Shown one piece after another: positions 8,204 through 37,187 of a stretch of 61,523 bases of DNA (position 1 is its first letter; each line of letters opens with the position of its first letter). This DNA is from Stylophora pistillata (Eukaryota): the NCBI RefSeq assembly GCF_002571385.2, contig NW_019218229.1, positions 184,257-245,779 on the forward strand, read 5' to 3'. A model generated the notes under the pieces. That model was not told where the DNA came from, did no database searches, and worked only from the letters and a program-made list of their open reading frames with translations. Position numbers and translations under genes: made by a program.

Positions 8204-9247
8204 CTAGTTTTGTAACTGAGTGTAATCGACGTCTTTTTTATTCAATCGCAAGTAGCGGCAATAGTCCAAATCTTCTGTGATCCGTTTGGAATCCACAGCT
8301 TTACGTACGTGTGGGTTTACTAAGCTCTTCTTTTTGCTGGTTTCTTTTCCTTTCAATTCTTGGAGATAAATCGGAGGTAGTTTAATTGGAGGAAGAAGTT
8401 CAGACAAAGGCTTTTTTGCCGGACATTTTTCCTCTTCGGTAGGAGTTAGTCTTGGCTCAAAGTTTCCCCTAGCGCACACTGTATGCCTTCGTTGTCTTGT
8501 CTGGCGTGAAGTGTTCGAGGCCTTGTGGTTCTGTGAATCGTCCTTCGTGAGGCAGTCGCTTTTGGGATTAAAAGTGAGAGATCGCGAACGACCGACAACG
8601 GAGTGTCTTCGAACTCTAGAGCGCAAGGTGTCACCTATGGGACATGTGACTCGTGCGGAGGAGAGATTTCCTTCGGAGCTCGACTTGCTGAGAACGCTAC
8701 TCGCGTCCCAATCTTCAGGTATAACATTGGTCCTTCCTCCCCAACTTATTTTACGTCTAGACCGCGAGAGTTTTGTTGAACCTGGTTCAGCTTTTGTAGT
8801 CAAAGAATAATGTTCGACTTTTTGTGCCCATGGTTGAATGTGGCGTGAGTTTCGATGAAATCCAGTCGGGTTTATGTCCTCTTCGAACTGAGAGCTGGAC
8901 AGACTTTTCAAATTCGCTTCCCATGATAGTAAATCGTTAATACCATTATCGTTTTCAGCACCGCTTTCGAAAGTACTTTGTTCTTCGTCAGAATTGCTCT
9001 CAAAGGCAAACCCAAGATCGTTTGTTTGTCCCTCCAGCAACAAATTGTGAACTCGGGAGAGAAGATTGGATCGTGTCTTAGAAAAGTCACTCTCGAGTTC
9101 TTCTTTCTGTTTGTCGAGTCTTTTGTGGAGGATTTTTAGCTCCGAATCCTTCCGTGCGTTGCGGGCCAGTAGCTCTTTGATGGTCATTTTTGGCAAAGTA
9201 TATCCTTCGTACACGAGTTTCTCTTTACTCGTCATATTCTTTGGCAT
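8204..9247 (-). CDS. Uncharacterised 347-aa protein, CRYLR family member 1 (subfamily A)
   Basis: Long uninterrupted ORF. N-terminal coiled-coil LLARNARKDSELKILHKRLDKQK, LSELLPPIKLPPI and C-terminal EDLDYCRYLR motifs are shared with four other ORFs in the window. Confidence 0.85.
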   Translation of the reverse strand: MPKNMTSKEKLVYEGYTLPKMTIKELLARNARKDSELKILHKRLDKQKEELESDFSKTRSNLLSRVHNLLLEGQTNDLGFAFESNSDEEQSTFESGAENDNGINDLLSWEANLKSLSSSQFEEDINPTGFHRNSRHIQPWAQKVEHYSLTTKAEPGSTKLSRSRRKISWGGRTNVIPEDWDASSVLSKSSSEGNLSSARVTCPIGDTLRSRVRRHSVVGRSRSLTFNPKSDCLTKDDSQNHKASNTSRQTRQRRHTVCARGNFEPRLTPTEEEKCPAKKPLSELLPPIKLPPIYLQELKGKETSKKKSLVNPHVRKAVDSKRITEDLDYCRYLRLNKKDVDYTQLQN

Positions 9248-11341
9248 TTTGCCCTTGAATTTTTATCAGAACTTGCAAGGATTCCGATGTTATTTTTCCG
9301 TCTCGGTAGACATGTGTGTGACATTATATTCCCTGTTTACGGAGGCGTCTTAGCTCTGACTGACCCCGTGAAATTAATCCTAGTTGTATTTGTTCCGAGA
9401 TAGTAATTATTTACTTAACTTGTTACCAGGCATGCGCTAACGAACGATTCCAAACATATTTCAGCTTCTTACTAACCTAATTGCGAAAGTGATTGACCTG
9501 AATTGACCAGCCTTGCGTTGAAATGACTGTGCTTGTAAATAAACACATGCGAGAGTCACGACAGTCAGTTTTTTCTAAAAGGCAAGCATGCCTTGACTGG
9601 TTTCATCTGCTCCCGATGCAAAAGGGTTGGTTATCAGTATGCTACAGCTGGAGGAAAATTTAGTTTTTGATGGAGCCTAGGAGGAAATATTGCAGAAGTG
9701 AGAAGAAGAACGTTCAATGCCTGGGTGTTCTAGTTGCACATTTCGCGCTGTTTTAACTACTAATCCCACAACTTATTCAACAGTTCTTGAATGTTAGTCA
9801 TGCAAAGTCAATGAATAGTCGATAAGTCTCTATTGTGCTTGCAGCAGATCTTCAACCTCGGATTAAAAAAGGTTAATAGGTTTTGAGCTTGACTCTAACT
9901 AGCAAATTAGCTCTTCAAGGGAGAGCTGGAGTGTGGTCTTAGAAGGCTCTTAGCCTTTCCCTGCAGCCAGCAGAAATAACAATTCCGCACCTCTGTGTTT
10001 ACTACTTAAGAATCACGTGTTTAGATTCGCGTGATAAGAAGAGGGGGCGTGATTTTTGAAGCTGCACGTTTTGTGCTTGTAGTCTAAGCTGATGAAATGG
10101 TGCCGACATCACAAAGTCACGTTAGCAAGATGAAAGTGGAGATAAGTTGAGAAGTTCTCTGCAGTTAATATTGAATAACCGTGACGAACTTGGAAGTCCG
10201 CTGTGTTCCTGATTAAAATTTACCAGCGAAGAATTTAAATCGGCAACACAATATGTGTGGTTCAATCCGTTACCCTATGAGAGAACCTAGATGGCGCTCC
10301 ATTTGGGGGGTGACCGTGAATTTCCATTCTCCTTTAGACGCGCGTACGAGCAACGATGACGGGAGAAACTACTGGCTGTCAAATTAATGAAGTGACTTTA
10401 CGAACCATTTCTGATGAGCTGATCCTTCTTGGCGGCTAAGCTCAGTCTTCAAAAAAAGGGGAAAAATCAATAAACGCGCACGGTTTTGTGTGGGCTTTAT
10501 TACACTGGGCAATCGGCACACCCCCTCCCCTCCCCCCTGATTCCCCCCTCCTCACCCTACCGATTCCCCCTTGATGAGATGTAGCAGTTAATATTGCGAT
10601 GAGCTCAATGAAATAGGCTTTTTTAAATCCTGGTCGACAGACAGTTTTAATCGTAATTGCATATAGTGATTGCCTCCGAACATTATTTGAATGCTATTGT
10701 TCCGTTGGTAAATTCCAGAGCAGGTAATTTTCAGAGCGATTTGGTGTCTCGAAGGCAGAAAGAGCCGTACTGAACCAAACAGCAGTCAGAGTTATCTTTC
10801 ATTTGATTGAGTGACAGGACAGATATAATAAAAACGAAATTAATGTGGCTCTTGAAATTCCTGTAGCTGTTTCACCGTTTTTTTTTTCTCAGGGAGAGCA
10901 GCCAGTTTCTAGTCTTATCGATATGAATCCTTCTCCACTGTTTGCCGCCCACTTTGTTATTGTCCGACATTGTGTGTCTCTATTTTATATTTACCTTTAA
11001 TCTCTTCCGTGAGAATTAGAGTCTAGACAGTGTAGCTTGAGTGGCACCTTCATTTTATTTCTGGCCCATTTAGCCGGCTTTTTCAGCCTCTTATTCACCT
11101 GGGGTATCGTAAATACAGGTTCAAAAATGCCTTATGTTTAACACGTCTTTAACGAGAATATACCTGTACAACTTCAAGAATGGTCACAATATTTTTATCA
11201 ACTGAAGAGCCACTTTTTTAAATTTTCGTGTTCCAAGAAGTGAACGGTCAATTAATGATTGTGCTTGGAAAGTGAGAAAAGTTAAATTATGCTTGGAGTA
11301 GTCTAAATATGGTCTACGCCGTGTAAATGAGACAAAAAGAT

Positions 11342-36596: not shown

Positions 36597-37187
36597 TTAC
36601 CCGCGCAAATATCTAATCTTTTGCAAATCTTGCCAGTCGTCAATAACAGAAGATGAGACTTCAGTCTTCTTTTTTCCATAAGTAGAAATTGGCCACGGTC
36701 GGTTTACGTCACTGTATTTCTTTACTTTCGCTTTTCCTGAACCTCCGTGTATATCTGGAAGAGAAGTCGAAGTGCTTTCATACTGACCCAATGAAGAGAA
36801 TGTTCCGCTCCTTCTTTTGGCTCCCTCGGAAAGTAAAGGAAGCCAGGGCGATAACAACTTTTTGTCAGTTATATCTTGCGTTCGAGATTCCTTGTCCAAG
36901 TCTGTGTCACTCTTCCACCGACTAACAGTAGTTTCTGGTGGAATTAAACTCCTAGAAGACAAAGGTCGTTGACTCGTGAGAGTCCCAGAGTTTCGAGTCA
37001 CCTGTCGTTTTAAAAGAATCTCCTTTTTCTTGAGGAATAATCTCGCTTCTGAATTCTTCTCTTTCTCTAGCAGTCGAGCCCGTTTGTTAAACGCCTCTTG
37101 GTTGATAGCATTCTTCACAAGTAAAGATTTTGTGATGTTCTTTGACAAGAGAATGGAGGCGTCTTCGTCGTAACCATTTGAACTCAT
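36597..37187 (-). CDS. Uncharacterised 196-aa protein, CRYLR family member 5 (subfamily B; IRYLR variant)
   Basis: LLSKNITKSLLVKNAINQEAFNKRARLLEKEK, RPLSSRSL, WKSD, SLPDI, DDWQDLQKIRYLRG*. Confidence 0.88.
   Translation of the reverse strand: MSSNGYDEDASILLSKNITKSLLVKNAINQEAFNKRARLLEKEKNSEARLFLKKKEILLKRQVTRNSGTLTSQRPLSSRSLIPPETTVSRWKSDTDLDKESRTQDITDKKLLSPWLPLLSEGAKRRSGTFSSLGQYESTSTSLPDIHGGSGKAKVKKYSDVNRPWPISTYGKKKTEVSSSVIDDWQDLQKIRYLRG

Follow-up and report, generated by a model that had tools for sequence, protein, structure and literature searches.

The question raised by this locus is what kind of protein could be encoded by five consecutive minus-strand open reading frames (ORFs) that resemble one another mainly in three short segments. 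The ORFs lie between positions 8204 and 37187 of a 61,523-nucleotide stretch of the Stylophora pistillata genome (contig NW_019218229.1, positions 184,257 to 245,779 of the forward strand), which is called the window here and to which coordinates refer unless another contig is named. A preliminary description, made from the letters of the DNA, had taken them for a tandem array of single-exon genes from an uncharacterized family of mostly disordered proteins. It is clear from our results that each of the five is an intact gene that is expressed and has one coding exon, and the family to which they belong is undescribed, with no Pfam model, PDB sequence match, or literature mention found.

All five minus-strand frames appear, intact, in a mechanical ORF list at the coordinates first proposed for them. 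Gene 1 (8204-9247) encodes 347 residues and is supported by the ORF list, by orthologues, and by a structural model; gene 2 (18618-19391) encodes 257 residues from an ATG at 19391 within a frame that spans 18618-19406, and gene 3 (29972-30691) encodes 239 residues from an ATG at 30691 within a frame of 29972-30712. The coding sequences of gene 4 (33447-34118, 223 residues) and gene 5 (36597-37187, 196 residues) lie within mapped transcripts. In a joint alignment of the five proteins, gene 1 is only 24-27% identical to genes 2-5 (only about 21-27% for the pairing with gene 2), and the 20 invariant columns are grouped into three islands of constant order, as had been claimed. The first island is an N-terminal helix segment, K..N....L.K....LL, with an invariant Asn. 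The second is LPP..LP.I[Y/H/F] (LLPPIKLPPIY at residues 284-294 of gene 1), shortened in genes 3-5 to SLPDI (SLPDIH, SLPDIN, and SLPDIH, respectively). The third, close to the C terminus, is an acidic stretch followed by L..[C/I]RYLR, in which L...RYLR is invariant; it reads EDLDYCRYLR in gene 1 (residues 324-334), WKPLRQCRYLR in gene 3, WKELRNCRYLR in gene 4, and WQDLQKIRYLRG in gene 5 (coded on the minus strand at 36603-36617), where Ile replaces Cys to give IRYLR. Gene 2 carries RTKTLSDILPPVILPPIF and EDLEDCRYLR downstream of its helix. A degenerate DNA pattern for CRYLR has four matches in the window, all on the minus strand and exactly in genes 1-4 (8247-8260, 18637-18650, 30009-30022, and 33481-33494), against 0.16 expected, and none of 100 shuffles reached four. 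All five window genes fall under the definition that we use for the family, namely the Asn-containing helix, LP-x-[IL]-[Y/H/F], a C-terminal L-x-x-[C]-R-Y-L-R, and a single coding exon, and the 61.5-kb window contains no sixth member.

RNA reads and RNA sequencing (RNA-seq) contigs from four runs were mapped over positions 32400-38399. Transcription of genes 4 and 5 is seen directly in this mapping, and that of gene 1 in an RNA contig. Coverage, which had been proposed as a check on the array, extends over approximately 32470-34219 (gene 4) and 36055-37300 (gene 5), and the DNA between is silent, with zero depth at 34400-35999 in all four runs, which rules out DNA carry-over. Gene 5 has the highest depth of the mapped stretch, and its contigs reach 36055-37253. 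In the stranded run, every first mate over both genes is on the plus strand, the usual signature of minus-strand RNA, so genes 4 and 5 are minus-strand transcripts. No splice joints were seen in the reads over either gene, and both mRNAs are thus unspliced, with 5' leaders of approximately 70-100 nt and 3' untranslated regions (UTRs) of 0.5-1 kb. In addition, 33-46% of the sampled words of 29900-37300 are present in polyA RNA-seq runs under five studies.

For gene 1, a Logan contig of 4079 nt (L002) follows 9283-6690 colinearly at 99% identity, spans the whole gene, and gives it a minus-strand mRNA with a long 3' end (6690-9283). Beyond approximately 6687 this contig skips an intron of the convergent plus-strand neighbor (in the window, ...ttccag/GAGGATGA) and must therefore be RNA-derived; the gene 1 transcript overlaps the 3' end of that neighbor within the single contig. 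Gene 3 is carried by a contig of mRNA size (L003, 1430 nt), and another contig of mRNA size (L024) encodes the exact gene 2 protein and is colinear with the window, including 68 nt of 5' leader before the ATG. A 5' UTR intron in gene 2, hinted at by the sequence tttttcag just before the ATG, is unsupported, since L024 runs colinear through this site. The single-exon structure given in the preliminary description thus holds, as no joints are found over genes 4 and 5 and the contigs are colinear over genes 1 and 2; the coding region is a single exon in Nematostella and the two other relatives examined as well.

Sequence variants were classified by hand codon reading and are few in number. Those in RNA from genes 4 and 5 comprise three synonymous changes and one non-synonymous change, the latter in the linker. 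Gene 1 differs from L002 by six non-synonymous changes, no synonymous change, and one codon indel, all within linker residues 107-210, and the islands are untouched. This pattern is compatible with constrained islands joined by fast linkers.

The family extends well beyond the window. A profile of 17 coral sequences, searched with one profile iteration against 1.84 billion representatives, returned 111 proteins at E<=1e-3 (44 of them at E<=1e-10), and many matches extend over the entire length between N helix and C terminus; 27 relatives were found with gene 3 as query and 25 with gene 1. One orthologue of gene 3, at 81%, comprises over 500 member sequences, and gene 2 is the most widespread type (Acropora, Desmophyllum, and Nematostella-like). 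Named members come from the corals Oculina patagonica, Desmophyllum pertusum, Acropora digitifera, and A. millepora and, outside corals, from Nematostella vectensis (LOC116616611) and the hemichordate Glandiceps talaboti (LOC144446773), and every one of them is annotated only as "uncharacterized" or "hypothetical". At least two paralogues are present in Nematostella, the second of which comes from what we take, by its accession, to be the original Joint Genome Institute assembly. Full-length orthologues with matching start and stop occur in several coral families and in Nematostella. The hemichordate protein carries all three islands, including LVLPPVILPAIH and EEWEQLKRCRYLRI, and its N helix was matched by the coral profile with 93.5% probability in hhalign. 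Across an alignment of 47 sequences, the R, Y, and R of RYLR are invariant, and the Asn, the L-P, the Leu four residues before the Cys, and the Cys itself are each at least 90% conserved. As judged by these sequences, the family had arisen no later than the divergence of stony corals from sea anemones, and it has a hemichordate member in addition.

Within this family, the window array consists of three orthologue groups. The two subfamilies first proposed (genes 1 and 2, and genes 3-5) survive in part: genes 3-5 do belong together, but genes 1 and 2 each have separate orthologues across corals. Gene 1 orthologues are 56-98% identical over their full length, and those from other stony corals are 56-61% identical across 96% of the length, so that, among its own orthologues, gene 1 is constrained in the middle as well, and the earlier notion of free-running linkers does not hold for it there. 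Among 26 orthologues of this group, K166 and S168 are invariant and I167, W169, and G171 are at least 90% conserved, all within the RRKISWGG segment (residues 164-171); the additional islands of the group are KISWGG, ENW (W180), RVRRH (R211/R213/H215, the RVRRHS site of gene 1), and RRHTVC (R253-R254-H255-T256-V257-C258).

The description of a tandem array of five is accurate for the window, but the array is only one of four family loci, and the 398-Mb Stylophora assembly holds at least 10 members by profile search. The other loci are a tandem pair at C84, one gene at C650, and two at C44. The C84 genes are near-identical tandem duplicates (L016, and L018 at C84:89828-90337), the latter interrupted by an assembly gap in the form of a run of N. 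The C650 paralogue (133608-134165, minus strand) has the N helix and LPPISL, has no CRYLR, and ends in RKRVSFEGP, and the C44 pair have divergent N termini. In Desmophyllum, a gene-2-type member lies on the same strand as a gene-3-type member and 9 kb downstream of it, an order that matches the window; the array is therefore older than the separation of these corals. Just upstream of this gene-3-type orthologue (L022:4659-7280) lie long tandem repeats that translate as (GWLT)n / (NQPV)n, probably a satellite rather than a gene. A clade that includes a Nematostella paralogue (L023, with P0092, P0116, P0148, and P0155) has an extra island, [EM]PFY[LI][RKQ], upstream of the LPP motif, which is not present in the window genes.

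AlphaFold2 models of genes 1 and 2, run with the family alignment, agree with the earlier view of mostly disordered proteins with short conserved islands. In gene 2, the model has a helix at residues 22-83 (window 19143-19328) with a predicted local distance difference test score (pLDDT) above 90, a disordered stretch at residues 90-180 with pLDDT 44-55, a rise to 75-82 at the LPP motif, and a short helix at 236-245 that, with RYL, reaches approximately 68. Gene 1 is modeled with the same layout, with a helix at 23-75, an LPP rise to 79, and a helix at 320-328. The proteins are thus predicted to be mostly disordered, with one confident helix of 50-60 residues and a basic Ser/Arg-rich remainder. 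Across the family, the order is the N helix, a fast-evolving basic Ser/Arg-rich stretch, a proline motif, and a C-terminal short helix. The proline motif is LPP-x-x-LP-x-[IL]-[Y/H/F], minimally LP-x-I-[Y/H/F], usually with an [RK]-x-x-S site before it, and the motif of the short helix is [DE]-L-x-x-C-R-Y-L-R. The N helix, read by hand, is amphipathic, with the invariant Asn at heptad position "a" and Leu at +7 and +14. The linkers contain many R-[RK]-x-[ST] sequences, such as RRKIS, RVRRHS/T, and RRHTV; the gene-2 type has RKIS or RKVS just before the N helix, and in most members an [RK]-x-[RK]-x-[LF]-S-x-[ILF] site directly precedes the LPP or LPDI motif. The N termini are hydrophilic (MPKNMTSKEK, MENKKIGG, MKASHEES...) and none resembles a signal peptide, which makes an intracellular location probable.

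Given this layout, the explanation that we favor, with confidence a little better than even, is that these are phosphorylation-regulated, motif-bearing docking or adaptor proteins. The long helix would pair with itself or with a partner helix, or would lie in a groove of the partner; pairing is suggested because the Asn occupies a heptad core position with Leu at +7 and +14. LPxI[Y/H/F] and CRYLR would be conditionally folding contact motifs that engage a conserved cellular partner, and basophilic kinases, with consensus sites of the protein kinase A (PKA), protein kinase G, or calmodulin-dependent kinase type, would gate these contacts by way of sites that flank the motifs or lie between them. 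Versions with differing linkers would have arisen in corals by tandem duplication. In the gene-1 type, the RVxF-like RRKISW module, present in one to four copies in orthologues, could recruit protein phosphatase 1 (PP1). Both partner binding and phosphorylation are what we infer from the arrangement of motifs. A bolder form of this proposal seems possible but doubtful: LPxI[Y/H/F] and the [DE]LxxCRYLR helix would act as a hitherto unrecognized pair of motifs on which a conserved metazoan enzyme or scaffold docks, and the proteins would be ancient phosphorylation-gated regulatory subunits that predate the cnidarian-bilaterian split, were expanded in corals, and were lost from most bilaterians or are no longer recognizable there.

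Several points weigh against the docking or adaptor explanation. The function is argued from sequence logic. The "d" positions of the N helix, again read by hand, are mostly polar and thus poorly hydrophobic, which makes self-pairing uncertain. R-x-x-S/T is frequent by chance in basic Ser-rich proteins. The RVxF-like motif is not in genes 2-5, so PP1 recruitment is not the shared function. Finally, no vertebrate, insect, or nematode members were seen in the one-iteration profile search, which would be odd for a core signaling adaptor.

One of the other explanations casts the proteins as regulatory or targeting PP1 subunits, which dock by an RVxF-type motif with a PKA-type switched serine and for which the remaining islands are secondary contacts. 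It fits the gene-1 type best, where the invariant RRKISWGGR conforms to the PP1 rule [RK]-x(0,1)-[VI]-{P}-[FW] and occurs as two to four repeats in some orthologues; RRKISW (residues 164-169) lies in predicted disorder, with pLDDT below 50, and is conserved; among the window genes, only gene 1 has such a motif. The end of the C650 paralogue, RKRVSFEGP, is a textbook RVxF-type sequence, and a relative resembling the Nematostella paralogue P0096 has RRKISF. However, no RVxF match was found by sequence reading in genes 2-5 or in most distant members, the universal islands are left unexplained, and the regular expression is estimated to occur by chance approximately 0.4 times per 350-residue protein; we regard this explanation as unlikely, also in a narrower form that is confined to the gene-1 group. 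Quite improbable, in our judgment, is that the proteins bind a filament or lattice in the manner of microtubule-associated or ciliary inner proteins, with the helix and basic chain laid along the polymer and the islands as contact patches. One long isolated helix followed by a basic Ser/Arg-rich extended chain would suit such a role, and the nearest ESM Atlas clusters of a paralogue are chordate proteins of unknown function that include CIMIP4/TEX33, although their scores, only 0.76-0.80, are, like the best ESM Atlas scores overall (0.77-0.80), below the meaningful level that excludes shuffled proteins and can serve as leads only. Against it, two family profiles searched against PDB sequences, axoneme structures included, returned nothing or noise at E=2.3, no RFX X-box was found near the array promoters, and vertebrate members were not found.

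The islands might instead be pieces of one small fold, in which the LPP segment and the CRYLR helix pack on the N helix, within or between chains, and the linker is a phosphorylation-controlled tether. That the three islands are always kept together in constant order speaks for such a fold, as does the climb of AlphaFold2 confidence to 75-82 at the LPP motif within an otherwise disordered chain, seen in two independent models, but the C650 paralogue has no CRYLR and the C44 paralogues have divergent N termini. A complex prediction for the gene 2 N helix (residues 15-90) with its C-terminal part (residues 178-257), run without controls, gave a listed score of 0.00, which the tool treats as neither for nor against. 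We consider a single fold very unlikely. The chance that the ORFs are non-functional, whether as chance frames, transposon-derived sequences, or decaying retrocopies, is very small, and this explanation is effectively refuted. It would account for intronless tandem duplicates with LINE-like (long interspersed nuclear element) fragments between them, and for the sole close comparison of gene 1, with its six non-synonymous and no synonymous changes. The orthologues are nevertheless full-length, the gene order is kept in Desmophyllum, the genes are transcribed, and the approximately 10 copies sit at fixed positions at four loci. No transposase, reverse transcriptase, integrase, or gag Pfam domain was found in the family proteins, and this, together with low copy number and orthologous positions, means that they are not a mobile element.

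The surroundings of the array contain several other features. Four cyclic AMP response element (CRE)/ATF-like boxes sit 40-200 nt upstream of genes 3-5: CGTGACGTCA at 37357-37366 before gene 5 (in full, TGACGTCA), and CGTGACG[TC] at 34227-34234 and 34279-34286 before gene 4 and at 30895-30902 before gene 3. None were seen before genes 1 and 2. The window has seven CGTGACG[TC] matches against 1.05 expected, a statistic that is optimistic, as the pattern was picked after alignment; the remaining matches are at 38012, 40787, and 43289. These boxes are possible shared promoter elements of genes 3-5. The convergent plus-strand neighbor of gene 1 (approximately 1-6690) is a multi-exon gene, seen via L002:2438-4078, for a protein of at least 546 residues with SDS22-like leucine-rich repeats (LRR_9, 1.2e-18; LRR_4, 6.5e-17). 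Between array members, 17065-17916 and 24178-24681, both on the minus strand, look like C-terminal fragments of LINE-type reverse transcriptases and have no Pfam match at E<=0.01. Upstream of the array, ORFs at 38822-39388, 40931-41470, and 55975-56667 on the minus strand and at 43751-44236 on the plus strand are fragments of other genes; among these are a PAN/apple-domain ORF (1.7e-5), a weak PHR-domain ORF, the N-terminal exon of a Fringe-like glycosyltransferase (1.1e-10), and an unassigned 188-residue ORF. The sparse RNA coverage over 37600-38200 probably comes from the 3' end of the 38822-39388 gene.

If the docking or adaptor explanation is correct, this would be a family defined almost wholly by short linear motifs, which have persisted through several hundred million years of change in the linkers, and the coral expansion, which has given at least 10 genes whose linkers differ, would show how a regulator diversifies. 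A conserved partner could be sought in Nematostella, for which genetics is available, with the invariant nine-residue CRYLR helix and the LPxI motif as well-suited baits. Should no partner be found, this would be one more conserved family of unknown function.

No full-length match to a characterized family or to a transposon ORF was found in Pfam or the PDB. Pfam hmmscan at E<=10 on 27 members and three further paralogues from the same genome returned only sub-threshold noise (DUF4854, Prp31_C, and others). The preliminary description had noted a likeness to CCDC190, which is likewise small, with a coiled-coil-like helix at the N terminus and a long domain-free tail. Membership of the CC190 family (PF15768) is defined by a profile hidden Markov model (HMM) match at or near the curated cut-off of 27 bits, and this HMM matched none of the 27 members at E<=10, including the five window proteins, 17 aligned members, and 10 distant members, so that the family does not belong to CC190 by this measure and the likeness falls away. 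A six-frame search of the whole genome with PF15768 likewise gave no match at E<=10; it was also silent in all 14 control genomes, and the hmmscan result is therefore the one that carries weight. Full-text literature searches with gene identifiers and the strings CRYLR, RYLR, and LPPIY returned only suture brand names and papers on oomycete RxLR effectors. The latter share just the four letters R-Y-L-R with the present family: an RxLR effector has its motif after a signal peptide, within approximately the first 60 residues, whereas RYLR here lies within the last 25 residues of animal proteins that have no signal peptide, and the two are unrelated.

Several known motif classes were set aside in turn. 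A PKI-like pseudosubstrate reading of RRNAI fails, since this sequence lacks the P-3 Arg and is part of the helix, and a WW-domain PPxY ligand fails because many members have H or F instead of Y. By eye, calcineurin PxIxIT/LxVP, EB1 SxIP, B56 LxxIxE, cyclin RxL, WH2, and kinesin W-acidic motifs each fail in part of the family. The N helix shares with bZIP-type zippers an Asn at heptad "a", Leu at +7 and +14, and a long confident helix, but the family has no in-register basic DNA-binding region and no Pfam bZIP match, and its "d" positions are mostly polar. There is a parallel in design with PP1 regulators that have a phosphorylatable RVxF motif, such as the muscle glycogen-targeting subunit GM (PPP1R3A), whose RRVSF site is of the RVxF type with a PKA-switched serine. 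These have in common with the gene-1 group, and with RKRVSF of the C650 paralogue, a disordered chain and a basic-flanked [RK][VI]x[FW] that contains a serine for basophilic kinases. They differ in that there is no sequence homology and that genes 2-5 and most relatives do not have the motif, and we know of no counterpart among PP1 regulators of the helix, LPxI[YHF], and CRYLR islands. The family itself is undescribed, but the type of protein to which it would belong, a motif-bearing disordered regulator, is already familiar.

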